A stretch of 64,000 nt of DNA from the NCBI GenBank assembly GCA_051530055.1, contig CM121341.1, forward strand, positions 186,001-250,000, in the 5' to 3' direction. The translations under genes and the position numbers were made by a program. This DNA comes from Neoechinorhynchus agilis (taxonomy: Eukaryota; Animalia; Acanthocephala). This document shows, piece by piece, positions 42,825-63,481 of the stretch (within the stretch, counting starts at the first letter, position 1; each line of letters begins with the position of its first letter). Below the pieces are notes generated by a model, which ran no database searches, was not told the origin of the DNA, and was given only the letters and a program-made list of their open reading frames with translations.

Positions 42825-44815
42825 CTTCGCCATTAAAATTGTTTTGTTCTCCAACCATAAGTTCGGAGGATGTCCTGTTTGCATTATTGAGTTGAAGAGT
42901 ATGGTCAAACCAACGTAGTGCGCTTCGAGTGCCTTGACGCTCCTGAGTGATATTTTGTCCGGTCCAAGTGCATTTCCAGGTTCAATTCCTCGGATGGCGT
43001 TTTCAATTTCTTCTTTTGTTATAACGGGCACATTTTGAAGTAAAATTGGATCGTCAGGAGAGTTGTCCTCTATTAAATACGACTGGTTATCGCCTTCGAA
43101 GAGAGCGCCGTAATGCTTTATCGCCGTCGATGGATTAATATTCGGCATTGATAATCTCGCATCTTTAAAAATTTCGTTTGCAAGACGTGCAGTATCATTG
43201 AAATATAGGGCGCGGTTACGCTGCCTCTCATTATTCTTCGATTGCCGTTTATTCAGTGCGCGCATTCGAACGCATTGGTATAGACCGGATTCATCAATCC
43301 AAATATTGAATGACGATTTCGCAATTGTTCCTGAACGAATCCTTTGAGGAGGATCAATATTTGGGCCATTGATTACAAAATCGCATTCATATGCTGAAGC
43401 GGCTTTATAAAATTAAATGTTGCGAGAGCACTTGACAATTCTTCAATGCCTCAATCGCAGCCTCAATTGTAATGTTAGCATCCTGTAATCTTTCGCAAAG
43501 GATCTCGAATGTTTCAAGTTTCGCCCCGATTTCTTCAAGAAGACGAATTTGTATTTTTCAGTATAGGGATGGGTTGCCAAAAACATGAAAGGCCGCTGCA
43601 TATAATGCAATTGTTGGTGATTTCCTCAGTTTTATAATTCGAAGCCCCAATTCTTTGGCTTTTGAAATCGTTTTTGATTCGAATGTATTTGTCTTTCCAC
43701 ACCTCAAATAGTTGCTATATCTTGCTTCAAATTCATCAACAAATTCTCTATCAATTGATCCTGATTGATTTCGCATTATTTCTTGTTCCTTTTCTATTTA
43801 GTTTCTATACCGAGGGTGCATCCTATCATTTACTGGGGAGCTAAGTAAGAACTCGAAGAATTCCTCCGAAGTAAAATTGCTTTGCTAGGCACCCTTAGAG
43901 ATCCACAGGGTCCATTTTCATTCTCTGATTGTAATGAGGTAGATATAATGTCCGCTGTCGCAAGCTTAATAGGCAGAGTTGGGGAAGCTCATAAGTTGAG
44001 GTAGGTATCGCGGCTGAAGTTTTTCTGGAAAATGAGGTACAGAACGTGTGTCGGGAGCACGAGCTTCAATATCATTTTCTCTTCCGCAAATCTTTGTCAA
44101 CGATGGTTGCCCAAGTTGAAGTATACACGATGCGTCTGATAATCGTTTGCGACATGGAATGTCAGCAACTTTGCATTGCATCTTTTGGTCCTCTTCTGTA
44201 GGGGTAATAACAGACTCATTGTTCACAGCAGGAATTTCGGCAGTCTTAAACCTTTTCAAACAATTTTTTTGCACTGACTAAAGTGATTGCGCGCACATAT
44301 AAAGGAGAACGAGCGATGATTTTGACAATTATGGCAGCGAAATTCGATTTCCGTGCAGTCGTGATCGTCCTTAGGTGCTCAATGACGAAATTATACTGTC
44401 CTAGTATAACAATTTTCAGTGGACACGCAGGCAAGAAACTGGGCCTCCAGCACCAAAGTATTCAACAGTTACCGAACTTTTCTTTTCGTGGTCGCTTTTG
44501 TATCGATTTTTGTCATAAGCGCGCCTTGTGTTGTCTGGGAATCGTTCCTGACACCTTTTGAGATGAGGCCCCATTGATCATACCTCCGGGCATTCATACA
44601 CACGGCAGATTGGACAAATCCACATAGTAACATTGTGCTTATGAACGGTGGCCTGGTGTTCATTGAAGAGTTTAACACTCGATTTGCCAACCGCCATAAG
44701 ATCACAATCCCCACATTTCAATCCATACTCTTGAGAAATGGGGTATATCATTTTGTGGTCGTCTTTCACACCATCAGTCGCTTGTACTGTACCCGAGACG
44801 ATAGCTCTTGAGGTT
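42825..44815 (-). mobile_element. R2-like element D, degenerate 5' half (zinc fingers to pre-RT region), frameshifted
   Basis: Fragments match element A by eye: YPISQEYGLKCGDC...H...H...WICPIC, ACPLKIVILGQYNFVIEHL, RNQSGSIDREFVDEFEARYSNYL, LGLRIIKL, RNRALYFNDTARLAN, GPDKISLR, WLENKTILMAK. It stops before the RT core, at the satellite junction. Confidence 0.9.
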
Positions 44816-45004
44816 TGTTGAGCTTCAGCCAGCTGTTGAGACCGCTGTTGGATTGTGTGGTCATTATGTTGACGTGCATCTGAAGCGGATTGTGGTGATA
44901 TCTAACAATTCTTTGGCGCCTTCATATCCGCCGTTTGATCCGCACTTCGCGACCTTGCACTTTTGTACAATAAAAACTCTAAGGTTTCTATATTATTCTC
45001 AACA
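44816..45004 (+). mobile_element. Probable 5' LTR (189 bp) of a Ty3/Gypsy element
   Basis: Perfect 7-bp terminal inverted repeat TGTTGAG...CTCAACA, AATAAA near the 3' end, and a gag ATG 33 bp downstream. Confidence 0.7.
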
Positions 45005-45037
45005 ATTTATTGTGCAAAAAGCCACCTTTCGTCAATA

Positions 45038-45772
45038 ATGGCAGAAAACTCTCCAACGTCATACACCTCGTCGAGAACAGATGATTCCTCGGGGATCTTC
45101 AAGGAAACGTTTCGACCGGAACGGTTTGACATCTTGCCACATGAATCCGGATCAGAAAAACATTACAAGTTGTGGAAACGAAACTTCCAGTTCCTCTCTA
45201 ATCAACCTTCCAATAAACAAATTGAAAAACTGGAACTACTGTTTCTGTCTGTTGGCAGTATCGTCTATGAACTACTTGAGGATAGCAAATCGTATGATGA
45301 AGCTATGAACACTCTGGAAAAGTTGTATGAGCGAAAGCCAAACAAAATCCTGGCTCGACATCTATTGACGATGCGTAATCAAAACGACGACGAGGATATC
45401 GACTCATTCATACAAGCCTTGCGCTTGTTGGCCCGAGATTGCGTATTCGAAAATGTATCAAATGAACAATATCGCAACGATGCGATAAGGGATGCGTTTA
45501 TATCCGGATTAGAATCCGACTCGATCCGTCAACGTTTGTTAAAAAATGAAGATCTGGATTTCGATAGAGCTCTTCAACTCGCAAAATTCCTACAAATCTC
45601 TTACGAAGAACTAGAGCAATACAACCGTCGTTCCGAAGTGTCGATCAATGCTGTGCCTTCCGAAACTGATTGCTATTTCAGAAATATTGAGGAGGAAGAG
45701 ATGAGCGCTGCTCTCAATCGCCGGGCAAGTTCTCCCAAGAGAAAATGTTTCTTCTGTGGGGGTGGAATGTAG
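45038..45772 (+). pseudogene. Ty3/Gypsy gag-like ORF, truncated within the CCHC knuckle
   Basis: RPERFD...YKLWKRNF, ARHLLTMRNQNDDEDIDSFIQALRLLARDC, IRDAFISGL...IRQRLL and a terminal KCFFCG are typical gag features. Confidence 0.85.
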
Positions 45773-46062
45773 AGTAGCTTCGTTCTCATTCGCAATGTAA
45801 TGAATTCGCTCCTTTACACCCGATTGCTTCTCCCTGTCACCTTCTTCTATCACTGGCATCCTGGAAAATATGTGAGCGTAAAAGTTCCTTTTACCAGGAA
45901 CATCTTCGATCTCACTCTCATAACATGACAATGCTAGGGCCCAACGAACAAGGAGTGAATTTTCTACAATGGACAGAACTCGATATCGACCGAAAATAAA
46001 CTGCAAGGGTTTGTGGACCGTGAACATAGTAAAATGATTTCCATGAAGATAATCATGAAGAC
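45773..46062 (-). pseudogene. Inverted Gypsy RNase H C-terminal fragment
   Basis: The minus strand reads RLHDYLHGNHFTMFTVHKPLQFIFG...RWALALSCYESEIEDVPGKRNFYAHIFSRMP, matching the Gypsy RNase H pattern YLxGxxFxxxTDHKPL...RWxxxL...PGKxN..AD.LSR. Confidence 0.85.
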
Positions 46063-46411
46063 GTAACTATGACTTTCTCTATTGTAAAGGCATTTTGGAC
46101 ATAGACGAACCAAGGAATCAAGAAAGCTCATGCTAATCACTTAAGGCTCAGGGAGATTGGAAATGCTGTTCAATTAGGTCTGAAAGATGAGGCAGAAGAC
46201 CTGGAAAACACGATTCCCATGTGGAACAGCGAAAAGAAAAGGGAGAAACAGAGGGGCCGAAGAAGTTAGTGAGCAGAATGAACCCTTAGATCAGAAGGTG
46301 GAACATAATGAAAATGAATTGACGGATCGGAAGGACGATATGGATTTCCGACCAAGACGAAGCACGCGAGTACGATCGAAACCCGTTAGACCGCACGATG
46401 TCCTCCTTTAA
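46061..46411 (+). pseudogene. Gypsy integrase C-terminal tail, degenerate
   Basis: TNQGIKKAHANHLRLR and a terminal PRRSTRVRSKPVR, followed by a polypurine tract. Confidence 0.7.
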
Positions 46412-47269: not shown

Positions 47270-50200
47270 GCAAATTTAGTTTATATTTTTATTTCTTTAT
47301 TATTTCAATCTGGTTTTGTTAGTTGGTCGATATTCCTCTGTTGTTTTTTAACTTGTAGATTGTTTTTAACAATCGTAGAGAACAAGTTCACCCCATGAAG
47401 TGGTTCTGTAATTGCATTGGTTTCTGTGCTGCCGTTATTGGCGTGGTTAACGTGATCTATTCCGATAAACTGAACACACGTAGTCTTTTTAGTAGTACCG
47501 TCAAGTTCCTTCCTCGTGTTCCGACTACCAATCTGATTGTCTTAACATCGTGTTTTTTGAAATCGTATTGAGTTGCAATTTTTTCAGCGATAACTTTGTA
47601 TTTTGTTTCTTTTTCCGACATAATATTCTCGGTTGTCTTTTGTCGTCTCAGTGCACCGTAAAATCTATGATGTTTCCCTTTTTCCCGCGATCTAAGAATA
47701 TAATATCCGGTTTTTGGAGGTGACATTAGTTGTCGTAGATACGGTTTTCGGTAAGAACCCATCTAAAGTGTCCTTGGACTGCATCATGACGCTCTATCAT
47801 TTTCGTTGTATTTTTCGAGCATTGGTAGAGCACATGAATTTGGATCTCTGCTTGTGCAGTGCAGTTTCTGCAATTCTTACTTCGAGCATTGTTCATCCAA
47901 GACAGATTTGATGCTACCTCTAACAGTTGATACCGCATTGTGTAATTGTGATGGTTGTGTGGCCGGTATCGAAAAGTTAGCGCCGGATGATTGAAATGCC
48001 ATCCGTGAACGCGTCCATTCCTAGGTATTGAGTTGATGCGTTTTCCCACATTTTCTTGAGGTATTCTATATAGATGTTTCTCATGTTTTTCATTGAGGAT
48101 CCAGCGGTGCTGGTAAAATATTCCCCGAGATTTTTGTAAAGACGATGGTCCTCGTCGAGGTTTTGATACATCATTCCGTATCTTGTGTTCAACAGCATTT
48201 GCCTTCTCCGTGATGGTCGTGGCCCCGACGAACGCCGCCTCATATTTGAGGTTTCGTACAGCGGCCTCCATATCACGTGTAAATGAACCATTTTTATCAG
48301 TTGGTACGAACGAATTGTAATTGCGATATTTGTCACGTTTATCTCTCTTATCCACTCGGATGTGCTCAGTTTCACCAACAGTATTCTTTGCCCTACTCAT
48401 ATAAGCCAAGAAGGCCGTACCTAAGTCAACTGGACTGTTGGGCAACGACTCTAAATCAAGGTCGTCATTGTAAGTTGTCATGACTGGCAGATCATCAAGA
48501 TGGGATAATGCCTGAAACTCCTCTTCGATTTTCTCTATCATGGTCAAACTGGAATCAATTTTGAGCTGGGCTACCCTAGACTTTTCCAGAATTCCGAGTA
48601 ATATAGGATCACGAGGACGTTTGATTAACGATTCTCGTGTAGACTCGACTTGCCTCTGATTCTGGGAGAGGATCTCTTTAAACTCAATCCTTTTCTTAGC
48701 CAATATTTTACTGACTGTCGAGCGAAATTTAGCTCGTATTTGCGTGTGATTAGAACTGCGTATGAGATCAGTAGGGGAAGCACCAAAAATTTGAGTAACG
48801 ACAGAAAGTTGATCTTGTTGTGTCAAAGTACTTTCGGATAAATCCGTAGAGCCAGAATTGACATCTTTAGGAGGCAAGACCACAACGGGATCACCTTCAA
48901 TCTTCTTTTCAGTAAGAGGGGATGGGAGCGAAGGCCCAATTATCGATTCAACAAGATGAGGAAGAATAGTGGCTATAACCGCCCTAGCCCTAGAGAGCAA
49001 TCTTCTAGTAACCATTGATATGCGGGCTTGGCGGGTAGTGAGAGCCTCAAATGTAGGGCAGAAAACACCCAAGCCAGTAATGAGACCACCAGCCATCAAT
49101 TCTTCTTCCGAAAGGAGTTTAAGCTTAAAGAGTTGAGCGGCAACGAGAACACGTATGAGGAGGAGGGTCGAGGTGTTGCGCTTAATTTTAATCGTGTGAT
49201 TGGATTTAGTTCCATCAAACACTTCACGAACGGACAGTTCATCGTCCATGTCAAGATCTGCGAATGTCCGATGAAAAAGATGATGAGCCCAACCATGAAT
49301 GTTCTGGAATGAAGAGGCAGATTGCCCTATCCTTTTACCACAGTCAATGCATGTCTTACGAGCTACGACATACAAATCATAATAATCACTAGGACTAAGA
49401 AGAGTTTCAGGACTGAAATGTTGCTCGTATTTGCTTATTTCACTCGATTTCAAGATACAGGGGCGAGCTATATCTTTATAGAAAGCGAGGAATGCGTCAA
49501 GGAAAGCTCTCCTTTCAATGAAGGGCGTATCCGTAGGCAATACAGCCATTTCAAAACCACCCTGTCTAAAAGCTAGTCCTCGAAGAGAAGAGTCGGCTCC
49601 GTATACATCGTCAGGGTGACAAGAGAATACAGTGAGGGCGAACTCAACCATACTCTTCTGCGAACCCGTAATCAGACGATAGATACTTAAAGCCTTCAAA
49701 TTAGATGAATCTCCGGTAGATGGTGGCACAACGGCCTCTGGTAAAGAAGACCCGGCAACAGAGGTCGACGACAATGGGATGGTTGCCTCAACGTTAGAAG
49801 TCGAAGGTGGCGGAGCAGAAGCTATTTGACAAGGCTCTACACCAACATGCGAAATCTGAACGGGTTTAGCGAATTGCGGCTCACGCACGGTGGTGGTCTC
49901 CACCGTATACGTCGCCTCAAGAGAAATATTCGACTCGCGCTGGGCAGTGGTCTCTGCCTTTGGCGCCGTCTGGGCCGCGGGTGTCTCATCTATCACATTT
50001 ACACGATTGGCGTTAGCAACGTCCACTGACACACCTCGCGCGCCCCTCAACCCGTATATAGCGTTAAATCGTGCAACGAGTTGGTCTCTTGACATATATG
50101 GTGTACCTCGAAGATTGGCGGTAGGATTGTCTTCGAGAATATACCCAGTAGGTTGGCGCACCTTCGGGGCCTTGGGGGTCAAAGGTTCTCCCAATGGTTG

Positions 50201-53200
50201 CGCAGAAGCACTCACACGACTAATATCTACAGCTTTATCACCCTTGGGCAAGATGGAAATGACAGACCTCACATTCCGAACGGGAGAGAGAGGTACGTTA
50301 TATACCGGAGTGTATCCGTATAGAGAACGACCCTGCACCTGCTCGTACGGAATATAAGTTCCCTCACTTATCATCTTTTCCAACATGCGAGCATGAGTTA
50401 AGTTTGAATCACGATGTTGCATGGAGAAGAGTTGGTTCTTACCGAATGCTTTATCGACAAAAAACTCAGTCCTCGTTTGCTTCTCCACTGCTCGTCAATA
50501 CGTGTCAAGTTAGTAGACGATATGTCCCAGGATGCTTCGAGCTCAGCAATCAGGGCCTGAGTTTGCGTAAGTTGGGCACGCTCCGTAGCAGCAGAAAGAG
50601 ACCTCAGAAGGTCTAAACCCTCCTCCAATGTAATTTCCTTCAATGGAGTGCCCCCGTGGTATTTTACTGGATCCCTTTCCATGATGGCCTTTAGCTTTAT
50701 GCCGTTTACCCTTAATTTAGATTCACGGTCCACCATGAGCTTAGAGCTTTTGTAACTATGATGATATGTCAGACACTTATCAGGGCTCAAGAAAAGCTTG
50801 CATTCTTTGAGCTTACTTTGAAGAGTGTCTATCATTGCTTGGAGGTCCGGATAATTGTCAGCTAATAATAGTACGTCATCTGCATATACCAAATGCGACA
50901 GGCGATGGTCTTTCTTTAGCTGGCATCCCGTATCGAGTTTTCGGACGTCATGCAGTGCCTCGTCTACGCACAGCGCGAACAGCAAAGGAGAGAGGGGGTC
51001 CCCTTGCTTTACTCCTCTCAAGAAATTAATGGGATCTGAGGGTCTGGCGTTAGACATACGGATCCTCGTAGTACTTCCACGGTATGTGCTCATGACGTAT
51101 CTTTGCCGATACGCAAGACATCCCTTTCTACGAAGTGCTTCCTCTACAGCAGCGTGCGAAACGGTGTCAAAAGCACTCTTGATGTCAAAAACAGCTACTG
51201 CGAGAGGTTGCTTGTTTGCCCGCTTTTCTCTTACTACACTACGGAGAGTGAGAAGATTGGCCATACATGCCGATCGGTCAAACGCCGTTTGTCCTTCGTC
51301 CAGAGAGCATACTCTACGAAGCCGTTGCAGAATAATGCGGTGCAGGACGCGCATTAAAACGGAGGAGATCGTAATTGATCTCTAGGTCGACTGAGTTGGT
51401 AGCTTCTCCGGTGACGCACTTGATTTGGGCAACAGAATTGTTTTTGACTCACTCCATGATTGTGGATGGCCTCCATGTTGCATGACGAAGTTGAAAAGCA
51501 ACGTCGTGCCCAGAAGTAGCGGATCGAATGTGCGAACATCACGAACCGTTATCTTATCCGGACCCGGTGCGCTTGAAGCTTTGATGCTTTTAAGGGCATC
51601 TTCAACCTCCACCGTTGTGATTACCGGCCACCGCATTTCGAGCGACTGCTGTTGATATGCAACAGTACTTTCCAGCAGACGCTCAGTCCAATGCTCCCTT
51701 CGTATAAAGGACGATAATGATCAACTGTTTCTTGATGACTCAGTTGACACTCTTCGCTCAGTATTTTTATACACTTCGGCTGCCAACTTTGAAGTGTTTG
51801 CGTAGTAAAGAGTTCGATTTCGTCTCCCCTTGAGCATACCGTCCTGGAACCTCGTAATTCGGCGACACCTAACACACGGGTAGGTGCCCGATTCGTTCGT
51901 CCACACGTTGTACGCGTGAGTTCCGATTCCGGGGCAAAAGATTCGACGCACTTGTCGTTCATAAGGCGAGCGTCAGAGACGCTTTGCGCAACTTGCGCAT
52001 AGTACTCTGTCTTGAACCTCCATTGTTATTTTCGTCACTACGTTTTTCTGCAATGAATAATTGCCCATCACGTGGTAGGCAATAGCACAGAGAGCCTGCC
52101 TCGGACCTTTCCTCAACTTGATTTTAAAACCAAGCTGTCGCGCCTGGGAAACTTCCGGCACCCCAACACTACGGCCACACCGAAGACACTGTGCATATTG
52201 CGTAACAGCAGCGTCAATAGTCTCCATTAATGGATCCGTCCGATCGACGGGGGATTTCTCTCTCCGTCTCAAGGAAACCCTTGTATCTTGGATGAAAGTT
52301 TTTCTTGTTCAGCACATCCAGTACGCTCTCATATGCCTCGACCACTGTAAAAACAGATGGCTCGACTTTACAGTCTGCCTCTGCTGTTTCCCCTTCCCAC
52401 TGGCGTAACGACTGTGTCATATGAAGAACACGGCAATTCCTTGCCACCTACAATGGTAGGAACGGACAGAAGATAGGCTTCCTTCTGTTAGGACTTCAAA
52501 TATCCCCGGGGGTTCGCGCTCCTCGCTAGCCAGCTCGATGACCGATTGTTCGATTGATGGATCCATTATTTAGTTTCTTTCCTTTAAAGTCACGGATACA
52601 GCCACCTTGCTCTCGACGCCTGCAGGCGTTCATATGACTACGCATTGACACATAGTTTTCTGACTTATATGTCGAACACGCCGGGCACTGAAACCACACT
52701 CAGGTTGCTCCGTGTTCGAACATAAGATGTTCTTTCAATACTTTTGTCCGGTTACTTCAGTGGAACGTGGCATTACATTCTCGGCATTTCACTGGTCCCT
52801 CTGGTTCTGTGCTTTCTATCATCAAGCCACCTTTGCCTACTAAAAGGGCTACCTTTTCGACTGTATCGTCATCATACAACGCTTTTGCCTTTGCATGATG
52901 CTTTTTCGAGCACGTTTTGTAATGTTGGTCAATAGAGCCTATCGCCCCTTTTTGCAAGCCCGCATATCCATCTCACCGCCTGTTTGTAAGATGGAGACAT
53001 GTGTTGGATTGTCAACTTCACTTTTGATTTTCCCGTATGTACAACTCTAGGATCGCATATTGGACATTTTATTGATTCTTGAAGAACACGATGGTACTAA
53101 AGGTACACACTTGTAAGCTGTTGATCACTCTGTAATTGTTGATGAGCGTCATCTGAAACGAGGAGCACCAAGTCCCCGGCGGAAGGGGGTGTACCAAATT

Positions 53201-53250
53201 GCTTTTCATCAATATTTAGGTTACTTGGAGAAGTCATAGTTACGTGCGCC
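47270..53250 (-). mobile_element. R2-like element C, near full length, decayed, interrupted by a 2.2-kb insert
   Basis: It starts with a 28S-like leader and ATG at 53237. It has zinc-finger remnants (KCPIC, KCREC), HPRYKGFLETE, GPDKIT, RT motifs VKQGDPLSP and YADD (ORF 50398-51354), then after the insert LDEDHRLYK, CRNC...H...C, KETKY and VVGTRG. The ORF remnant ends near 47388. The 3' end is approximate. Confidence 0.9.
48214..50430 (-). CDS. Unidentified 739-codon stop-free ORF inserted in element C
   Basis: This is the N-terminal ~80% of track ORF 47726-50488. The first ATG in the insert is at 50422. It has an S/T/P-rich linker, a CIDC-x14-H-x3-H motif and a coiled-coil-like stretch. It shows no resemblance to the R2 proteins and has no stop of its own. 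Confidence 0.8.
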
Positions 53251-53259
53251 GTTTACTCG

Positions 53260-53669
53260 TTATAAAAACAGTCATCAATTTAAAAATTAAAACACGTAAT
53301 CATGCAGTATCTTCGGATTTTTCGAAAATAACAAAAGGAAAACAGAAATCGACTGAATTGCTTAAGTGCTGCTTCAGGTTTTCGTTGTTTATATCGAAAA
53401 CCAGTTGCGATTGTTAAAAAATCAAGAGAGTATTGGTTTTGATATTGATTATTATTACCTTTGTTCGGCTTTATAGTATTAGTTACTTTCCTTCATGGTT
53501 TGCTATGTCGCTCGATGAAAAAATGGAAGGTTTGTAGGCTTCCCCTGGCTGCTGCATTGGCCATGTAGATTGCTGTTTGCCGGTTTAGGCCAAATTTTGC
53601 TAAGCGGTTGAGAAAGGTTGTTGAGAAAGATCGTCGTGACCCGATACGAATTCCAACTGTAGACCTGAA
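53260..53669 (-). mobile_element. 5'-truncated tail of a fifth R2-like family (X): last 58 codons plus 3' UTR
   Basis: Hand translation gives FRSTVGIRIGSRRSFSTTFLNRLAKFGLNRQTAIYMANAAARGSLQTFHFFIERHSKP* (stop 53493-53495). It aligns with the C-termini of A (TIGLAVGSRGTYTPELLRRL...TAVNMAKTAA) and B. Not in the ORF track. Confidence 0.85.
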
Positions 53670-53887
53670 TCACTGAATAAGTAAAGAAACAATGATGGTA
53701 GTGGTATTTCACCGACGCGGCCTCCCTCCTATTCTACGCCCATCATGTTTCTTCACAGAGACTGACTAGAGTCAAGCTCAACAGGGTCCTCTTTCCCCGC
53801 CGTTACTCTCCAAGCCCGTTCCCCTTGGCTGTGGTTTCGCTAGGCTGCAGACAGGGACAGTAGGAATCTCAATAATCCATTCATGCA

Positions 53888-53919
<32 letters not shown>
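53670..53919 (-). rRNA. 28S rRNA fragment (250 nt) starting exactly at the R2 insertion site
   Basis: TAGCCAAATGCCTCGTCATCTAATTAGTGACG...GACCCTGTTGAGCTTGACTCTAG...GGTGAAATACCACTAC...TTACTTATTCAGTGA. Confidence 0.96.
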
Positions 53920-56900
53920 GAGCTACATTTATTCAAAGAAAAAAAATTACAAGCTTCTCGTAATCGACATCATTTTATTATTATTAGTTCCGGTTGTTAA
54001 TTATTGCTCAACTTATTTGTCTTCTCTATTATATTTTGTTGAAGGATAGTTAGCTGTCCTTCCTTATCTTGGTATTTTCAATTTTTGAGCATAAATCGTC
54101 TTCCGCAGAAGGCGTGAAAGACGCGAATGGACTGTTCCGCCGCCGTCCTTGCCATGTTGATAGCAGTCTTTGTCCCTAGAGAGAGTATACGAAGGCGGTT
54201 TAAAAGTTCCGCACTAAATGTTCCTCTTGATCCTACTGCAATGCCTATGGTCGAGACTTTATGTTGAGGAACTTTATACTTTTCAGCGACACTTGATATA
54301 ATCGACCTATATTTTTCTTCCTTGTGAGTCATTACTTCATCGGCACGTTTTAAACTAGTTTCATAATAAACGGCAACGTCTAGAATGTATACCTTGTCGG
54401 TGTCCCGCTGACGAAGGATAAGGTCAGGTTTATATAGTTGTCCTTCACTGTCGTGGAACTTGTTTTCACTTGAGACGTCAAACTGTGTACCATATTTGTT
54501 TTTAATAGCCCAAATTAATCGTCCCTGAACTTTATCGTGGCGCCAGGTCATAGGAATCGATGATGCATCGCACGCGTTGAGTACATGTGCACACATCTCT
54601 GCCGTTGCTGTGCAGTGCCTGCATCCTTTTGTGCGCTGTTTATCCATCCGACTTAAAACGGTGCCCACTTCCAATAGTTGTAAACGCAGCTTCACTTGCT
54701 CAACATAGGAACTGTGGTATCCCTGTCTGTATCTAAACGTAATCAAACTTCGGTCGAATTTACCACCGGCGAAGCACTCAATACCCGTTCCTTGGGTTGT
54801 CGTAGCCTTCCAATGTTTTAGGCAGTCCTCAGCAAAGCTGTCATGACAGATCAGTTCCCTACGTTCCTCATTTTTACGTATATCGATGCTTATACTGTTT
54901 GAGCCCATGTCAAGTGATTTGAGCTCTTTTTCCATATCTACTTGATTTCCGTACTTATTTAAAACTGCTCGAATTGCTTTAATTCTGGCATTCCTAATTT
55001 CATGAGCTATGGAACGAAATCCCAAACCGCCTTTCGATAAAGGCAAATAGAATGCCCCGTCATTTACGTAGCGAGGTAGGTCTAGCAATTTTTTAATTCT
55101 TGAGCGCCATTGCTCGTCTATGCGAGCAAGGCTAGTAGCAGAGACATCCCAAGCAGCGTTCAACCTACCCAGTAAGCGAGGAACCCCATAATCATTAAGC
55201 AAATGAGCTGCTTGCGTCCTAGTGAGCTGAGCAGTTTTTACCTGTGCGAAAAGCCTATTCAATTCGAAGAGCGCTTCTTCTAGTGTAGTATCTTTCCACG
55301 GCGTTCCCCCGGGGTACCTAATGGGATCGCCTTCCAACACGGCAGCTTATTTAACGCCCCCAATGCTTACCTCTGATTTATAATCGACGACCAATGTGCC
55401 GCGTTTGAAGGTTTGTCGATAGGTAACGCACTTTTCTGGGCATAGCATAAGTTGCATCTTGCTCAACGTTTCTTGTAATACATCGATCATTCTTTGCAGG
55501 TTCGGGTAGTCGTCAGCAACCAGAAGAATGTCGTCCGCATATACCAGATGAGATATACGAACGTCCGTTTTTAGTTTAACTCCAAGGTTAAGTTGTCTGA
55601 CTTTCTGTAATGCTTCGTCCAGAACTAAAGCGAAAACAAAAGGAGAGAGCGGGTCTCCCTGCCTAACTCCTCTTCGAAAACTTATGGGTTCGCTTGGTTT
55701 GCAGTTATTCATTCGTATTCTTGTTCGACTCGAACTGTATGACTTCAAAATATATCTATGTAAGTATCGAGGGCATCCTTTTGAGCGAAGAGCCGCGTCA
55801 ATATCGTGGTGCGAGACGGTATCGAACGCGCTCTTGATATCTAATATGGCCACTGCCGCAGGTTCCTTAGCGTTCCTTTTTTCTCTTAGCAAGCACTTGA
55901 GGACAAGGAGGTTGGCCATACAGGCTGATGGGTCAAAAGCTGTTTGGCCCTCATCGATGTTGCACGTTGCCCGGATCCTCTTCAAAATAATACGGTGAAA
56001 TATCCGCATTAGAATAGAAGATATGGTAATTGGACGCCACCCATCTTGTGTGCGTAGCTTTCCGGGAGGAGCACTTGGTTTAGGAATCAAAATTGTTTTC
56101 GACTCCAACCATGATTTAGGAGCCTCGCCGCATTGTAGCACATAATTGAATAGAAGGTTCATCCCAATGAGAAGAGGGTCGAAAGTCCGTATGTCTCTAA
56201 TACTTATTCTGTCGGGACCTTGTGCGCTAGAAGCTTTGATACAATCGAGTGCCTCCTTTACCTCATCGACGGAGACGAGTGGAAATGGGTCTACTCCTGG
56301 ATACCTATCTGTCATGCACGAACTTCCATGCGACGTGTCAAGTGAAGTACCACCTTCAAATAGGTTGCGATAGTGCGAAACTGTATCTTGGAACTCCAAT
56401 GGACAATTAACCCTGTCAGCACTTTTAAAGACTTCATTTGCCAGCTTCGACGTATTGGAGAAGTAAAGTGCTCTGTTTCGTCTTTTGTCAAGCTCTCGAT
56501 TATGGGCCTTTGTCAGACCTCGGCAGCGAGTGCATGGATAGATACTGCCTTCGTCGGCCCAGACACAAAAGACGTTCGCCCCAGTTCCCGGACAGAGGAT
56601 ACGACGCACTTTGTGATCATCCGGACTGTAGACCAACCAATCGCAAGAGTACGCAGATGCGGCAGCAAACAAAGCGAAAATTGGAGAGATTACTCTGCCC
56701 AAGAGAAAACCGTTCAGATGGTCTTCTAGGGAAATGTTGGCGTCTGGAACATTATTAGCTATCAAACGATAGTATCCTATATTACTGTTAATCTCACTGA
56801 CCAATTTTTCAGAGACTTTCTTCCATCGTGCTGGGTTTCGGTAGACATGGTACGCGATCGCGCAAAGCGATTGTGTTGCACCTCTTCTCAATTTGATTAT

Positions 56901-58692
56901 TCTAAGGCCGGCTTGTCTGGCTTTCGAGACTTCGGGACTCACCTTACTGCGTCCGCATCTTAGGTAATCTTCATACCGTGTAGCAGCCATCTCGACAAAG
57001 CCTTTATCGATCGGTCCTTCTGAATGGCGTAAGACGTTGCGCTCCGTTTCCAGATAGAACCTATATCGGGGGTGAAGGCCATTCTTTTTAAGAGACTTCA
57101 CGACGCCCTCATAAGCCTCTTCGATACTAAATTGTGATTCATTTCTCTCTCCATGTTCAATTAGTGTATCGCCTGTCGAAAAACTGGACGCCAAAGAATC
57201 GGGACGTCGCACCCAAGGAGTCGACAACTCTTCACTGTTTTCAAGCCAAATGTGCGCTGCAGACGCGACAGAATCGAAAAGCCGACTCGAGATATTCCAC
57301 GACTCGTGTGGCGAAGTGGAAGTAGGACCTTGCAGCACCTCTACGAACTCACGAAGGTGACCTGCAGACGGCACAAAGCCGACCGGCGGGCAGGACAGCT
57401 CAAGGCTCCCCACACCCTGCTCAGCAGCATCGCGCGCATGTGTACTGGGGTCGCGACCGTCAGACAAATGAGTCCCGTCCCCGGAATAAATGTGTTTTTT
57501 CCGTGCTGGGGAGGCTTGCACTACGAGAGACAACGGCATCCTCTTCGGGGGCATAAATATCCGGTCTTTCCGCGTGCTCACTGACACAGTAAGTGGTCCT
57601 ATCGCAAAATAAACCGTCTTTCCTTTCTTGGGCTTCACTTGTTGTTACCCCAGTGTCCGCGTCTTTTACCTTAACTCGCTTAAAGCACTGTGAATAATGC
57701 GCTCTGGCGGAGTAAATCGAAGCAGTGGAGTGGGTGTTACAGAGGGCGCAAATATACGTGATACTCTTCGCCAAATGGCATACTCTAAGGTGGTTTTCCA
57801 GAGAATTGTACTGCCCACGACCCAAAATTTTTTCATCGCAGCTCGGGCAGACGGCTGGTGAAGTTCCCCTGCGTAGGTAATTGCGGCCTCATTGAGCACT
57901 GGAAAGGTTTTGTTACCCTCCTCAATTTTTCTCAAGATCTCTCTATATGCAGAGACATTAAGAATCTTGCATTGGCGAGTATGCGCTCCAACTCTTCCTG
58001 GGGCTGCGCTCCGAAAATTGTTGCAGATTTTACACACCCATGAGATTGGCCCTCGCGCATGACTTTCTTTCATATGCTCAAGAAAGAGACTGTGCCTCGT
58101 TCTGCCCATAGCCTGAAAATTGCACAGAATACATTCTAAGTTATTTTCGGCCGTGATCGGATAACCAACTTCGATCATCGAGAGAGCAGGAGTCTCGCGG
58201 TCTATTGAGGAACTCATAAGAACTGGATAAAAGCTTAAAATAAAATAAAACTGTTATTAATTATCTAAAATCTACGAGAAATTCCTATCGGAGACCCTAT
58301 TAAATTGATAAAATACGTAAATAAAATTTCTAAATCACGTCACAGAAACACGGAAGAAGCGTCGAAAAAAACTGCGTCTCGCTGAAAGACGAAGCAAATC
58401 TCGCGGACTTAAAAAACGTGTTTAGGGGTGTCAATAACCCCCAGGAGCGACTTTAAATTAAAAATAAAGATAACTTTTGGGAGCGTGAATTGGCACGGGT
58501 TAAAAGGGCTGTGCTCTGCGAACGACGTAGACAGAAGAGCTCAGACCCCGTCGAGTTAGATAACCACGTGACGCTCTATCAAAAGCACTTCAATTACTTG
58601 TCGCTTAAGATTTTAAGTCCGGCGAAGATCTTTTTAAAATTTGAAAGCGGCAGATGTTGATATCTTTTGATGATAGATGGAAGTTACGTGCA
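53920..58692 (-). mobile_element. R2-like element B, full length, frameshifted
   Basis: ORF pieces 57666-58217, 57460-57825, 55347-57638 and 54078-55340 contain four zinc fingers, RQGDPLSP, YADD, CRHC...HVLNAC and KPDL...LDVAV...KEEKY. The 3' end abuts TAGCC. About 470 nt of putative 5' UTR precede the ATG at 58217. Frame breaks lie near 57865, 57630 and 55345. Confidence 0.93.
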
Positions 58693-58707
58693 ATGCTGTT
58701 TTTTTTC

Positions 58708-58858
58708 AAAAATGGAAGGTTTGTAGGCTTCCCCTGGCTGCTGCATTGGCCATGTAGATTGCTGTTTGCCGGTTTAGGCCAAATTTTGCTAAGCGGTTGA
58801 GAAAGGTTGTTGAGAAAGATCGTCGTGACCCGATACGAATTCCAACTGTAGACCTGAA
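58708..58858 (-). mobile_element. Second copy of the family X tail, also truncated at its 3' end
   Basis: Identical by eye to about 53519-53669, with the same junction to 28S. Confidence 0.85.
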
Positions 58859-59075
58859 TCACTGAATAAGTAAAGAAACAATGATGGTAGTGGTATTTCA
58901 CCGACGCGGCCTCCCTCCTATTCTACGCCCATCATGTTTCTTCACAGAGACTGACTAGAGTCAAGCTCAACAGGGTCCTCTTTCCCCGCCGTTACTCTCC
59001 AAGCCCGTTCCTTTGGCTGTGGTTTCGCTAGGCTGCAGACAGGGACAGTAGGAATCTCAATAATCCATTCATGCA

Positions 59076-59107
<32 letters not shown>
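58859..59107 (-). rRNA. 28S rRNA fragment (249 nt) starting exactly at the R2 insertion site
   Basis: Same sequence as 53670-53919 except GTTCCTTTGG versus GTTCCCCTTGG on the plus strand. Confidence 0.96.
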
Positions 59108-59251
59108 GAGTCGTATTTATTAGACGATTTCAAACAAATAATTTACACATTCTTTTCAATCATTGGCTTGGGTTGGTTTCTTTGGTTTTCTTGCTTTTTT
59201 TGTTGCTCGTAGTTTCTTTTCTTTTTTTTTCCAATTGTAACTGTTGATCGG

Positions 59252-62200
59252 CTAACGCAGTGACCAAGTGTGGCCCATAAAGTTGTTAAAAACTTGGATT
59301 GATTTATCGGCTGCTGTTTTGGCCATATTTACCGCAGTCTTTTCCGATAGGTTGAACACGCGTAATCGTCTTAGTAATTCGGGCGTGTATGTGCCTCGGC
59401 TTCCAACTGCCAATCCGATTGTTATTACGTCATGCTGTTTTAGATTGTACAGGGTTGCCACTTGCTCCGAGATAGGTTTATATTTAGCTTCTTTTTCTGC
59501 CATAATATTTTCGCCTCGGTCTCTTGTAGTCTCATAGTAGACCGCAAAATCAATGATGGTTGCTTTCTTTTGTTGTCGATCAATGAGGAGGAGATCTGGT
59601 TTATATAGTTGCCCTTGTTTATCATGTATACGGTTCTCGGTGTGAATCTCCCACCGAGAGCCCCATCGCTTCTGTAGAGCCCATGTGAAGCGTCCTTGGA
59701 CCGCATCATGACGCTCTACCATTTTGGTTGTGCTTTTCGGGCATAGATTCAGGACATGCAGTTGTGTCTCGGCTGGTGCCGTACAGTGCCTGCACATCTT
59801 ACTTCTGGCTTGGTCCATCCTTGAAAGATTTGTTGCGACCTCCAGCAGTTGATACCTCATTTTTACCCGCATTGTGTAATTGTGGTGGTTGTCCTGACGG
59901 TATCGAAAGTTTAGCTCGGAATGATCAAAAAGTCCTCCTGTGAACGAGTTTATTCCCAGAGATTGAGTAGATGCGTCTTGCCACTTTTTTTCCAGATATT
60001 TTGCATAAATATTCTTCAGGTTCTCGACTGTGAAATCGACCAATGACCCAGCGATGCTTATAAAATATTCTTCGAGATTTTTATAAAAACGTTGATCTTC
60101 GTCCAACTCACAATAATGTGATTTTGCTGCGATGTAAGTCTTCACTCTTGAACTCATAACAGAGTGTTTAATGGACGAAAAACCAAGACCTCCCTTGCAT
60201 AGTGGTAGGAATAATACCCCATCGTTTAAAAAATGGGGCAGAAATAAAAGCTTCTTTAGTTTTGTCCTCCAGAGCTGTTCAATCTTGTTTAAGGAGGTTG
60301 GCGAAATGTCGTGTGCCGCTTGTAATCTTGAGACGAGGCGCGGGAGTCCATAATCATTTATCAAGTGAGCTGCTTGTGTCGGACTTAGGCCAGCCGCCTT
60401 TGTTTCCTCGAAAAGTCTTAATAGTTCCGCCGACATTTCTTCTATATTGGTGGGCTTCCATGGTGTACCGCCCAGATATTTAATGGGATCTCCGTCTATT
60501 ATTGTGTTTAGTTTCGCTTCCCCAATGTAAGCAGTTGGCTCTCTCTCGACGACCAGTTTGTTATAAACATACCGTTGGTTGTAAGTTCTGCATTTGTCAG
60601 GCGATAGTTTTAGTCCCTTCTTAGAAAGTCTTTTATTCATGGCGTCAATCATTCGCTGCAGGTCCGTCATGTTGTCCGCAAGTAGGAGAATGTCGTCCGC
60701 ATACACTAGCTGGCTTAAGCGGCCGCTTCTGGTTGAGCACCCCAACCCTAGTTCGTCGACCTGTCGCAGGACATCGTCAATGCAGAGGGCAAAAACGAAA
60801 GGCGAAAGTGGGTCTCCCTGTTTCACGCCGCGATGAAACTTAATTAAGTCCGATGGTCTTGAACTAGGGAGGTGGAGCCGGGTGTATGAAGTACTGAACA
60901 CCTCCATCAGATACCGCCGCATGTATATTGGGCAGTTGTGCGCAACTAGTGCATGGTGTATTGTGTCATGGCTTACCGAGTCGAAGGCAGATTTGATGTC
61001 GAGAACTGCCAATGCGATTTGCTTCCTATCCGATCTCTTCTTTTTCAGCAAATCCCTCAATATGAGGAGATTTGAATTGCACGCTGCGCTGTCAAACGCC
61101 GTCTGGCTATCATGCAAACTGCAGCATTGTCTTAATCTTTCCAGGATAACCCGATGCACAATGCGGAGTAGAATGGATGATATTGTGATCGGTCTCCAGC
61201 CGGACATTGAATTCAAAGATTCATTATTCATCCCATTTTTCGGAAGCAAAATGGTCTTGTTTTGTAGCCAGGACCTTGGAGGAGAGCCCACTTGCATGAC
61301 GGAATTGACCAAGATTGTGAGCCCAACAAGGTGCTTGTCGAAAGCACGAATTTCCCGAAGTGTGATCTTATCGGGACCGACGGAACTGTTTGACTTTATG
61401 GCACGAATCGCAGCTTGTAATTCCTCCACGGTTACAGCTGGCCATAATTCCTCCAGCGCAAATGATTCACGCGAACCGGAGTCGGCAGACATACGAGTCG
61501 TGACCTGGAAATCTTCGAGCAGTGACCGTAAGTGTTTAACACATTCCTGTTGCGGTATAGAAGGCTGGCGGTTTTCATCCGATTTAAATATCAAGTTAGC
61601 AAGTCGACTTGTGTTGTTGAAATATAGGGCGCGGTATCGTCTTTTAACAAGATCATTTGACTGTTTCGAGTTCAGGCCTCGAGAACGCTCGCAGGGATAA
61701 GTTCCAGAATCGTCGATCCAGACGTTAAATGATGAAATGGAGACCGTTCGAGATCGGATTCGAATTGGGGCATCATCGTTTGTTGTATAAACTACAAAAT
61801 CACATTGATAAGCAGTCGCTGCGGCCCAAAGAATGAAATGAACTGACAGTTCGTTGTCCCTTTTAAGAGCATCAAGAATGTCATTTAATGATAGATTTGC
61901 GTCCGGTAGCATTTTGACTACATGCTCAAAATATTGGCGTTCACGAAATACAGAGTCCAAAATGCGATCCTTAACTCTCCTCCATTGTGTAGGGTTCCTG
62001 TGAACGTGAAAGGCGACGGTCGCTAGTGCCATTGTTGAGTTTTGTTTCAGCTTAACAATTTTGAGGCCGAGACTGCGCGCGCGGGACATTGCTGGGCATT
62101 CGAGAGATCTTTGCCGCCCGATTTTTAGGTACAATTGATATCGCTCGTTCATTGAATCGATAAATTCCTGATTAATTGGACCGGTTTGATTGCGTAGAAC

Positions 62201-63403
62201 GTCAGATTCATTGCTCAGAAAAAAGCGGTACCGTGGATGAATATCCGGTCGTTGAAGATAATTAAGAACAAATTCATGTCCTTCCTGTGCTGTAAACACA
62301 CATGCCCCAATATGGGGTGTAGGCACCTGATGCAGGTTAACACGATCACTCGGTTTACAAATTCTTGAGGTAGATGATTGAGTTGAGGTAGTAATAGAAT
62401 TCGAGGCAGTTCTTTGTGGTGTGATTTTAATATTTGATGGACCGTTATTGCGTTGAGCGTCATTGTAAACAGGATTAGTAACAGTCACCTCCTGCAGAAC
62501 ACAACCATTCGAATCGTCGCCCGTTCGGCGTGTCTTCTTAGGCGAGTGTTGTGAAATGTTATCTCCTTGATCTGGTAGCCCTGATAGTCGTTTCCGAGAG
62601 ATTATGTTGAGCGCTTCTGAGGTGTAGCGGTTTGAATTGAGGCAATTTTCTGATTCCTCCGGTTTGTACGAAGATTTTAAGTCCCTATCTTTGGAAACAG
62701 ACTTACAGTGTGTAACGTGGGAACGAATAGCTGGAAGTGCATCGTATTGAACAGCGCACGCTAGGCATTGAAAGGCTGTCGAATTTGATCTGTGGACGTT
62801 CTCCAAATGGCTGACAAGAGTGTTATAACGTCCTTTTCCCACGAGCGAAAGTTCGCATGCCGGACAAGCAGCTGGATCGTCCTCTCCTGATTTGTATAAA
62901 ATGATTGCGGTTGGTGCCGGATTGACATTAGCATGAGGATTCACAGAACTTAAAACCATGTTTCTAAATATTTCAGGTTGGATTGCTTTGCATCGTCGGA
63001 AATGTAGTCCAACACTCCGAGATTCGCGATGCTCAAAACTGTCACAAATGGGACACACCCAAATCACCTCCGCGTATTCATGGGCCCCATGGAGGTGTGC
63101 GAGTAGCAGCTTGAACTTTGACTGTCCAACGCATCCGAGACTACATACCGGGCAAAGAAGCATGTTGGTTTGATCGATTGGATAGCGAATTCTTATTGTT
63201 TTGTCTGCTGGATTATTGTTACTCGGTCTTTGGCCACACTTGGTTTGCTGTTGTTTGCTCATTCGATGATGTTGCTGTTGCTGTTGGTCTGAACGATGAG
63301 CGTCATCTAAAGATGAGCGCTTAGCAACCGATGGACGCGGGGCCACTAATGACTCCGAATATTCGTCGATGATTTTCTGGGTAGATTTTTGCGAGGAAGT
63401 CAT
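59252..63403 (-). CDS. R2-type protein: zinc fingers, Myb-like, OTU-like, reverse transcriptase, CCHC knuckle, PD-(D/E)xK endonuclease
   Basis: Uninterrupted ORF. The track starts at a GTG (63415); the first ATG is at 63403. Motifs: GPDKIT, WRPITI, LDIKSAFDSVSH, GVKQGDPLSP, YADD (60692-60703), KYLG, CRHC...HVLNLC, KPDL...IDFAV...KEAKY. Confidence 0.97.
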   Translation of the reverse strand: MTSSQKSTQKIIDEYSESLVAPRPSVAKRSSLDDAHRSDQQQQQHHRMSKQQQTKCGQRPSNNNPADKTIRIRYPIDQTNMLLCPVCSLGCVGQSKFKLLLAHLHGAHEYAEVIWVCPICDSFEHRESRSVGLHFRRCKAIQPEIFRNMVLSSVNPHANVNPAPTAIILYKSGEDDPAACPACELSLVGKGRYNTLVSHLENVHRSNSTAFQCLACAVQYDALPAIRSHVTHCKSVSKDRDLKSSYKPEESENCLNSNRYTSEALNIISRKRLSGLPDQGDNISQHSPKKTRRTGDDSNGCVLQEVTVTNPVYNDAQRNNGPSNIKITPQRTASNSITTSTQSSTSRICKPSDRVNLHQVPTPHIGACVFTAQEGHEFVLNYLQRPDIHPRYRFFLSNESDVLRNQTGPINQEFIDSMNERYQLYLKIGRQRSLECPAMSRARSLGLKIVKLKQNSTMALATVAFHVHRNPTQWRRVKDRILDSVFRERQYFEHVVKMLPDANLSLNDILDALKRDNELSVHFILWAAATAYQCDFVVYTTNDDAPIRIRSRTVSISSFNVWIDDSGTYPCERSRGLNSKQSNDLVKRRYRALYFNNTSRLANLIFKSDENRQPSIPQQECVKHLRSLLEDFQVTTRMSADSGSRESFALEELWPAVTVEELQAAIRAIKSNSSVGPDKITLREIRAFDKHLVGLTILVNSVMQVGSPPRSWLQNKTILLPKNGMNNESLNSMSGWRPITISSILLRIVHRVILERLRQCCSLHDSQTAFDSAACNSNLLILRDLLKKKRSDRKQIALAVLDIKSAFDSVSHDTIHHALVAHNCPIYMRRYLMEVFSTSYTRLHLPSSRPSDLIKFHRGVKQGDPLSPFVFALCIDDVLRQVDELGLGCSTRSGRLSQLVYADDILLLADNMTDLQRMIDAMNKRLSKKGLKLSPDKCRTYNQRYVYNKLVVEREPTAYIGEAKLNTIIDGDPIKYLGGTPWKPTNIEEMSAELLRLFEETKAAGLSPTQAAHLINDYGLPRLVSRLQAAHDISPTSLNKIEQLWRTKLKKLLFLPHFLNDGVLFLPLCKGGLGFSSIKHSVMSSRVKTYIAAKSHYCELDEDQRFYKNLEEYFISIAGSLVDFTVENLKNIYAKYLEKKWQDASTQSLGINSFTGGLFDHSELNFRYRQDNHHNYTMRVKMRYQLLEVATNLSRMDQARSKMCRHCTAPAETQLHVLNLCPKSTTKMVERHDAVQGRFTWALQKRWGSRWEIHTENRIHDKQGQLYKPDLLLIDRQQKKATIIDFAVYYETTRDRGENIMAEKEAKYKPISEQVATLYNLKQHDVITIGLAVGSRGTYTPELLRRLRVFNLSEKTAVNMAKTAADKSIQVFNNFMGHTWSLR

Positions 63404-63416
63404 AGTTACGTCCACC
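63314..63416 (-). ncRNA. Candidate HDV-like self-cleaving ribozyme overlapping the start of the element A ORF
   Basis: GGTGGAC (63416-63410) can pair with GTCCATC (63336-63330), which is followed by GG, TT and GCTAA. This order matches P1, P1.1 and J4/2 of R2 ribozymes. The P3/L3 segment is shorter than canonical. Confidence 0.45.
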
Positions 63417-63450
63417 GTTTACCCGCGCTTAAATTAATTTCTTCACTTTA

Positions 63451-63481
<31 letters not shown>

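Follow-up and report, generated by a model that had tools for sequence, protein, structure and literature searches.

A variant 28S leader and its antisense complement at the 5′ junction of an R2 element in the acanthocephalan Neoechinorhynchus agilis

The stretch of DNA analyzed here, a window of 64,000 nucleotides from chromosome CM121341.1 of Neoechinorhynchus agilis (Acanthocephala; assembly GCA_051530055.1), contains an intact R2 element that occupies the canonical R2 site of the 28S rRNA gene, element A (63416/63394 to 59108). Between the body of the element and the 28S remnant upstream of it lies a short 28S-derived leader that differs from the universal sequence, is complementary to a stretch within A to an extent well beyond chance, and occurs in different variants on different element copies in the window. 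We give an about even chance to a reading in which an intact R2 meets a 28S remnant at its 5′ junction here, and the leader is part of the R2 transcript and is passed on with the copy. Coordinates are those of the window, and the R2 elements and 28S pieces, with the features inside them, lie on the minus strand unless otherwise stated.

The body of element A occupies 59108–63393, and its open reading frame (ORF) comprises 1383 codons, open from an ATG in the leader (63403) to a stop at 59254–59252, with a 3′ untranslated region (UTR) of ~144 nt. The encoded protein has four zinc fingers of alternating CCHH/CCHC type, a reverse transcriptase (RT), and, at its C terminus, a CCHC motif with a restriction-like endonuclease. 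The zinc fingers and the CRHC and KPDL...IIDF motifs were seen directly in the ORF, and the match to Pfam RVT_1 was 1e-35. The best solved relatives of the protein are the R2 proteins 9nl2/9nl3 and R2Tg (9dou), at ~1e-78, and R2Bm (8gh6), at 1e-35, and a protein search with the ORF returned only distant matches (≤25% identity) that are labeled bacterial and are probably host contamination, with none from N. agilis. The 3′ ends of A (59108) and of a second element, B (53923), lie at the canonical junction, ...TTAAGG joined to TAGCCAAATGCC, and each end is followed by TAGCCAAATGCCTCGTCATCTAATTAGTGAC (Rfam model positions 2280–2310). Downstream of A, 28S sequence beginning at the canonical site (TAGCCAAATGCC..., +0 to ~+247) extends over 58860–59107, as identified by local Rfam matches. 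Upstream, a partly decayed remnant of the 28S rRNA gene (about −584 to −29) fills 63417–64000 (Rfam LSU_rRNA_eukarya, 211.7 bits), and the 5′ junction of A is in register with 28S up to −29.

The 28S flanking A equals the eukaryotic consensus up to ...GCGCGGGTAAAC (63417), and the next 22 nt (63416–63395) read GGTGGACGTAACTATGACTTCC where universal 28S has GGCGGGAGTAACTATGACTCTC. This replacement, already described in an initial annotation of the DNA, was evident both in the minus-strand sequence and in the Rfam alignment. The complete leader, GGTGGACGTAACTATGACTTCC(T), spans 63394–63416, corresponding to −28 to about −6. It departs from the universal sequence at −26, −23, −22, −9, and −8, and the Rfam alignment shows the same mismatches and locates them in helix 69, so that the form in A is GGTGGACG and its universal 28S counterpart is GGCGGGAG. 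The ATG of the leader (63403–63401) corresponds to the helix 69 loop, AACTATGAC, and is in frame with the R2 ORF of A; the frame is stop-free down to 59252 and is shut upstream by the TAA of GGGTAAACGG. In a third element, C, the leader ATG (53235–53237) is also in frame with the R2 ORF, and the frame runs to the first zinc finger with only one TAG on the way; in B the ATG is lost. It follows from the sequence that the R2 protein may start at an rRNA-derived AUG, 13 nt from an RNA end at −28.

Downstream of the leader, an element-encoded antisense of it is found at 63330–63356, composed of GGAGTCATTAGT (63356–63345), GGCCCC (63344–63339), and GCGTCCATC (63338–63330). Its last seven nucleotides, GTCCATC (63336–63330), begin exactly 80 nt past the first G of the leader and are followed by GG (63329–63328), TT, and GCTAA (63325–63321), this 9-nt span (63321–63329) holding the candidates of the initial annotation for P1.1 and J4/2; GGTGGAC at −28 and all of these downstream motifs are present as it had claimed. 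The 5′ strand of the P1-like helix, GGTGGACGT (63408–63416), pairs with 63338–63330 at nine of nine positions, seven of them Watson-Crick and two GU, and ATGACTTCC (63403–63395) can indeed pair, as had also been proposed, with GGAGTCAT (63356–63349). When the 22-nt leader was matched against the next 300 nt, the duplex reached −24.5 kcal/mol as compared with −14.7 ± 2.1 kcal/mol for shuffled sequences, and none of 300 shuffles was as good (~4.7 standard deviations), from which it follows that A encodes a genuine antisense copy of 28S −28 to −8. The duplex with 63356–63330 is an interrupted one of 9 bp and 11 bp. A minimum free energy fold yields the same two helices, and by fold energy the region does not stand out (z = −1.24).

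The strength of this result resides in the whole leader and not in its first seven nucleotides. Among Markov-simulated sequences, 40% had a GU-tolerant 7-nt complement of GGTGGAC within 300 nt and 13% had one of 9 nt. Requiring GG directly after the complement lowered the figure to 1.2%, and requiring CNRA within 12 nt in addition to GG lowered it to 0.4%, where both the GG and the CNRA criteria were picked after the sequence was seen. The 7-bp GGTGGAC/GTCCATC helix alone is not beyond chance (p ~0.4), whereas the complementarity of the whole leader is real. The universal leader pairs with the antisense of A at −26.3 kcal/mol, compared with −24.5 kcal/mol for the element's own leader, and does so through CCCCGC (63342–63337), a stretch at first assigned to an internal loop. 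As the universal leader pairs equally well, A does not depend on its variant leader, and the argument from compensation is weak.

Elements B and C provide the comparison within the window. B (53923–58707) is frameshifted, and C extends from 53258 to near 47370 and is interrupted by a foreign insert of ~2.2 kb. Divergence among the three lineages is deep, with amino acid identities of 44–49% between A and B, 46% between A and C, and 59% between B and C. The leader of C, GAGTAAACGGCGCACGTAACTATGACTTCT (53229–53258), carries GGCGCACGTAACTATGACTTCT at 53250–53229, a different variant as previously recorded, and differs from that of A at 4 of 30 positions. The leader of B is degenerate, GCACGTAAC------TTCC (58691–58679), and lacks TATGAC. 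A lone leader copy, D (ACGTAACTATGACTTT), lies at 46061–46076 on the plus strand, opposite to all of the R2 elements, and neither 28S nor R2 coding similarity is found to its left or right. The changes ACG and ACTT are shared by the leaders of all four copies. A has GGTGGACG, with GGACG where the sister lineages B and C share GCACG, such that the leader variants track the relationship of the elements.

Normal 28S is absent upstream of B, C, and D, with B preceded by the tail of an R2-like ORF and C by the 3′ UTR belonging to the same R2-like element (fragment E2). Moreover, the leaders differ although the 404-bp direct repeat next to the 3′ ends of A and B (58708–59110 and 53519–53922) is 99.5% identical, which supports inheritance through RNA. 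The missing helix 69 loop (TATGAC) of B would be impossible for a working 28S. These comparisons of sequence offer good indirect support for leader variants following the element copy rather than the local target, and they are in line with the earlier proposal that the leader travels with the element. The leader of C had also been considered as proof of transposition, with non-28S DNA upstream of it, a case that is weakened by the identification of the upstream DNA as the 3′ UTR of E2. There is a faint similarity to 28S upstream of C (p 0.01–0.03), probably due to AT-richness.

The strand that pairs with the start of the leader (P1′) can be followed across the three lineages. In a MAFFT alignment, TTCCGCC-GG of C (TTCCGCC at 53184–53178) and TTCGCC-GG of B (within TTCGCCGG, 58626–58619) align with GTCCATC-GG of A. 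The homologues in B and C complement 28S GGCGG(G/A) from −28, and both their position and their sequence are as expected of a −28 P1′ strand. The GG and the C-T that follows it are retained at the homologous site in B and C, and a purine-C-T is found within 0–2 nt in all three lineages. The P1′ strand of A, which matches its own leader throughout, mispairs with the universal sequence at two of the first seven positions; for the strand of C, the universal sequence is the best partner. One exchange sets A cleanly apart from C (−26:P1′, U-A in A but C-G in C), and −22 is C-G in A and C.U in C. Over the four copies, however, covariation was about that of shuffled controls, with 66.7% of cells paired compared with 65.7% and 2 both-side changes compared with 1.0 ± 0.8. 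The compensatory drift that the initial annotation had proposed thus finds no clear support in this result or in the equally good pairing of the universal leader with A.

A hairpin, GCGCTCATC/GATGACGC, lies just beyond the antisense at 63295–63319 and contains the 14-nt block AGATGACGCTCATC (63308–63295). This block is identical in C (53154–53141), third codon positions included, although the two lineages share only 46% protein identity and the similarity between their N-terminal peptides is not significant. AGATGACGCTCATC can form a 5-bp hairpin (GATGA/TCATC); it is also a nearly exact complement of GCGTCCATC in A and could compete with the leader for that strand. These observations bear on whether the pairing has a function at all. 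Were it a by-product of coding or a relic of an old inverted duplication, with the differences between leaders due to random decay of a dead rDNA unit, then the frequency of the 7-bp helix in simulated sequences, the covariation no different from controls, the position of the stretch in an open frame starting at the leader ATG, and the setting of the unit beside a satellite in a graveyard of R2 fragments would all be accounted for. Against this stand the full duplex, which outdoes all 300 shuffles, the identity of AGATGACGCTCATC at third codon positions despite the dissimilar N-terminal peptides, which is indicative of constraint at the RNA level, and the P1′ homologues of B and C, which complement 28S at the expected place. 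We regard pairing without function as very improbable.

Several points weigh against the leader being inherited and held by its antisense. The leaders of B and C show no significant duplex, and the extended antisense is found only in A. The antisense stretch is within probable coding sequence, such that the protein could account for some of its conservation. Of the three changes in the P1 strand, two preserve pairing within rRNA: position −26 makes G.U with −80, and in helix 69 the A at −23 has a partner in the U at −9. Other helices of the flank also have compensated changes (by eye against the Rfam consensus), which suggests that the rRNA lineage is truly divergent. It may simply be that A has local or native 28S sequence as its leader. 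Finally, the argument from the 99.5% identical repeat assumes that the leaders are as old as the repeat.

An alternative explanation that we hold to be possible, if on the unlikely side, is that the variant helix 69 is native to the 28S of N. agilis or to an rDNA subfamily at the edge of the array, that A is an ordinary R2 whose pairing strand is adapted to the rRNA of its host, with no internalized leader, and that B, C, and D carry decayed copies of this native sequence. Acanthocephala are a lineage of fast-evolving rRNA, and a common source is the simplest reason for −23 A, −22 C, and ACTT being common to all four leaders despite protein identities of 44–59%. In addition to the two retained pairs, −24:−8 improves from G.U to G-C, and two double compensatory changes in the helix spanning the insertion site (judged by eye against the Rfam consensus) imply that the flanks descend from a working, divergent 28S. 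The flank pairs −58:−45 and −80:−26 are kept, and GGTGGAC pairs acceptably (≥6 bp) with the P1′ homologues of all three lineages. On the other hand, helix 69 is nearly invariant in eukaryotes, and a divergent eukaryote (L125) that shares several of the flank changes still has GGGAGTAACTATGACTCTC. A C.U mismatch is left in the stem (−22:−10), A and C differ at −26 and −24 such that at most one of them can be native, and the leader of B has no loop. The upstream flank, with its uncompensated changes and, near 63520–63560, a universal core that is degraded (by eye, Rfam alignment), is not a working gene.

An uninserted helix 69 was not found within the window, and the 24-nt pattern TAAACGGNGNACGTAACTATGACT had no match in genome or viral contig collections. 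A metagenome scan with the 14-mer ACGTAACTATGACT gave at least 120 matches, none in an rRNA context and all attributable to chance, the pattern being too short. A search with a spurious ORF of 28S from +0 found nothing from N. agilis, the best match (83%) being to an unrelated divergent eukaryote with a universal helix 69.

The initial annotation had further interpreted the leader as the co-varying P1 helix of a ribozyme like that of hepatitis delta virus (HDV). A helix of the right kind for P1, 6–7 bp on the 3′ side of the putative cleavage site, is present, with GGTGGAC(GT) (63416–63408) pairing with (GC)GTCCATC (63338–63330). A CUAA of the CNRA type lies at 63324–63321, and the GG (63329–63328) and a run of C (63342–63339) of A are likewise found in C. 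An HDV-like fold requires a P3 of ~3 bp and an L3 of 7–8 nt, and L3 must reach the far end of P1 for P1.1 to form. The sole options for P3/L3 immediately 5′ of GTCCATC are GUG/CGC closing a loop of 4 nt and GC/GC closing one of 3 nt, and with such a short loop P1.1 pairing is geometrically doubtful. The shortfall of ~6 nt in P3/L3 had been noted correctly, and we judge it fatal for the canonical fold. No P2 of ≥5 bp was found in descriptor scans, the best being 4 bp (AGUG/CGCU). In a strict descriptor scan none of A, B, C, and D gave a candidate at the leader, and a relaxed scan of A gave no more candidates than shuffled sequence. The most conserved part of the fly and finch R2 ribozymes is CCUCCUCGUGG (Kojima et al. 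2016, PMC5035012), and a core of this kind (pattern CCTCCTCGTGG) is absent from all of the 5′ ends at up to 2 mismatches. Rfam returned no ribozyme family, hammerhead, twister, hatchet, and pistol included, at E up to 10 in 52000–64000, a search in which a true member with a long J1/2 insert could escape the covariance models. No complete HDV-like catalytic core can be drawn in A from its sequence, and the ribozyme reading of the initial annotation is not supported. The sequence UCCUCGC at the 28S/R2 boundary of A (63391–63397) equals the L3 loop of the antigenomic HDV ribozyme, which is probably coincidence; a compact fold built on it (63397–63391) was rejected, as neither P3 nor P1.1 is possible and C lacks the motif.

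R2 ribozymes are known to vary widely, with some lacking P4, one having a 4-bp P1, some having a mismatched P3 or odd L3 spacing, and some showing little activity in vitro. It was thus considered whether 63416–63290 forms an atypical compact, self-cleaving HDV-like ribozyme with a short L3 and no P4, which would use the leader as its P1 strand and cleave between C63417 and G63416, the mechanism of the initial annotation. Consistent with this, the 7–9-bp P1 starts exactly at −28, the commonest R2 cleavage site (PMC3774820). The GG directly after P1′ and the CUAA 3 nt on form a combination expected in only ~0.4% of simulated sequences, and all three elements retain the order P1′-GG-(0–2 nt)-R-C-U. 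As A also has an intact ORF, processing of its 5′ end should work. An L3 of 3–4 nt in place of the 7–8 nt needed is nevertheless sterically implausible, and the 4-bp P2, the descriptor scans no better than shuffled sequence, the absence of CCUCCUCGUGG and of any Rfam match, and the unremarkable fold energy all speak against such a ribozyme, which we consider unlikely.

The reading that we favor, a leader that belongs to the transcript and is passed on with the copy, would operate as follows. The 22–23 nt that adjoin A (28S −28 to −6, the helix 69 region) would belong to the R2 transcript, the R2 RNA beginning upstream in the 28S part of a co-transcript as it does in most R2 lineages. The cDNA would consequently end with the leader, and each insertion could write the leader anew, through annealing to the target and replacement of its −28 to −6 or through end joining; leader variants would in this way be inherited with the element copy. 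In the RNA of A the leader would be held in an interrupted helix of ~20 bp with the antisense copy at 63356–63330, the outer 9 bp of which occupy the place of P1 in R2 ribozymes of the −28 type. The RNA end might be produced by an atypical ribozyme or by trimming back to the helix. On this basis the RNA 5′ end would lie at −28, and the helix may define or protect it. A bolder form of the proposal, to which we attach a low probability, is that this acanthocephalan R2 lineage gave up the HDV-like core and that the ~20-bp helix of leader and anti-leader both defines and protects the RNA 5′ end, while the inherited leader supplies the AUG (in frame in A and C) and overwrites helix 69 of each newly occupied 28S. 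As for the overall reading of the initial annotation, an R2 at the canonical site with a leader that pairs with the element is supported, the ribozyme fold is not, and compensatory drift finds no clear support.

The favored reading has precedents. R2 RNAs have 5′ ends 9–36 nt upstream in 28S, with P1 formed with rRNA, and both upstream cleavage at −28 and RNA-borne propagation of junction variants are established for R2 (PMC3774820). Elements of the −28 type with an HDV-like ribozyme and a P1 that uses 28S are known from the earwig, silkmoths, zebra finch, planaria, and flour beetle (A) (Eickbush, Burke & Eickbush 2013, PMC3774820). Like these, A is at the canonical site with its junction in register, an element strand complements 28S from −28 and is followed by GG and CNRA, and the leader is also carried on copies without upstream 28S. 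A differs in having no P3/L3, P2, or CCUCCUCGUGG-like motif and a complementarity of ~20 bp instead of 7 bp, all known here from sequence. Silkmoth R2 ribozymes have no P4 stem, and in the model of the initial annotation for A, where the candidate catalytic C comes just three nucleotides after P1.1, P4 would be absent too; the silkmoth ribozymes, however, keep the canonical 15-nt P1.1/P3/L3 core and a long P2, and A has neither.

The idea of an internalized leader that is inherited through RNA was already proposed by Eickbush et al. 2013 (PMC3774820), who reported substituted 28S copies at R2 5′ ends and a model with a compensating P1′ change (Fig. 8 d/e). Internalized copies are present in the sow bug (24 bp, 1 substitution), the horseshoe crab (21 bp, 3 substitutions), and the jewel wasp, and the compensating P1′ change in R2 B/C of the sea squirt (PMC3774820). 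A resembles these elements in that a substituted piece of 28S travels with the element and variants would be propagated through RNA. Theirs, in contrast, is a direct duplication beside an intact target, whereas the variant of A replaces −28 to −6 of the target without duplication; and the model expects a P1′ change matching the altered copy, whereas the universal leader pairs with A equally well. To this body of work A adds an acanthocephalan host, a target segment that is replaced and not duplicated, an antisense match of far greater length, and the absence of a recognizable core.

The release of R2 RNA from the rRNA co-transcript and the sealing of the 5′ junction are the least understood steps of R2 mobility, and in gene insertion tools based on R2 the 5′ module strongly affects efficiency and precision (PMC11331408). 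An intact R2 that pairs its whole leader with an antisense and has no recognizable core would be a useful test case, the more so if the leader is inherited with the element and provides the start codon. Should uninserted 28S have the same sequence, the feature would be an ordinary R2 junction of the upstream type in a host with an unusual helix 69.

The overall order of the window is a 454-bp satellite, a minus-strand pile-up of R2-family elements, and the 28S remnant. The tandem satellite extends from 1 to ~42,700 with ~95 copies, mostly 90–97% alike, and some 350-bp and roughly double-length spacings. Between A and B, downstream of the 28S piece that follows A, fragment E1 (58708–58859) is the tail (last ~50 codons) of another R2-like ORF, matching residues 1328–1372 of A by tblastn. 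A second copy of the 28S piece with its R2-like tail lies beyond B at 53919–53519 and runs on into the 3′ UTR of the same R2-like element (fragment E2, 53664–53259). The 404-bp repeat around B consists accordingly of 28S +0 to ~+247 and the last ~50 codons of another R2-like ORF. An assignment of 58708–59107 to 28S +0 to +404 was rejected, as only ~247 nt are 28S and the remainder is the end of the R2-like ORF. The repeat resembles a very long target site duplication, which we infer to be its origin, with unequal crossing-over as the alternative. R9 of bdelloid rotifers, a member of the R2 superclade, has a 126-bp target site duplication in the account given by PMC5035012 (citing Gladyshev & Arkhipova 2009). 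R9 and the elements described here have in common a host within Syndermata, bdelloids being the sister group, and an R2 family in 28S, and the flanking repeat of B recalls the long duplication of R9. The 3′ end of B, however, is at the canonical R2 site, as in A, and not at the R9 site, and its repeat includes another R2-like fragment.

A copy of the E1/E2 tail with 94% identity is part of an R2-like element at ~6.03 Mb of chromosome CM121343.1 (locus L128, 5915–6094), the tail carried there having identified fragment E. This copy has no 28S nearby, indicating that R2-family elements of the N. agilis genome are not confined to rDNA. E1 and E2 are 5′-truncated pieces of a fourth R2-like lineage, both beginning at one point of 28S near +247. 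An R2-like 5′ half, G, at 44754–42816 corresponds to residues 71–725 relative to A (31–48% identity over the aligned pieces) and ends where the satellite starts.

The foreign insert of ~2.2 kb in C (about 48170–50440, minus strand) has a stop-free frame of ~700 codons that continues into the C-terminal region of the R2 endonuclease, and the two together are annotated as hypothetical protein ACOME3_000011. For the ORF at 47726–50488, an annotated N. agilis protein is 98% identical, and the locus of that protein agrees with the window at 100%. Paralogues of the inserted ORF occur on several N. agilis contigs with 46–82% identity and have no Pfam domain of note; neither 28S nor the leader was found at the paralogue loci L121–L124, L127, and L128. 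Finally, a 269-codon ORF on the plus strand at 44963–45772 ends in CFFCGGG, which resembles a Gag zinc knuckle, and an overlapping antisense ORF at the same position suggests a fragment of a long terminal repeat (LTR) retrotransposon nested among the R2 pieces.

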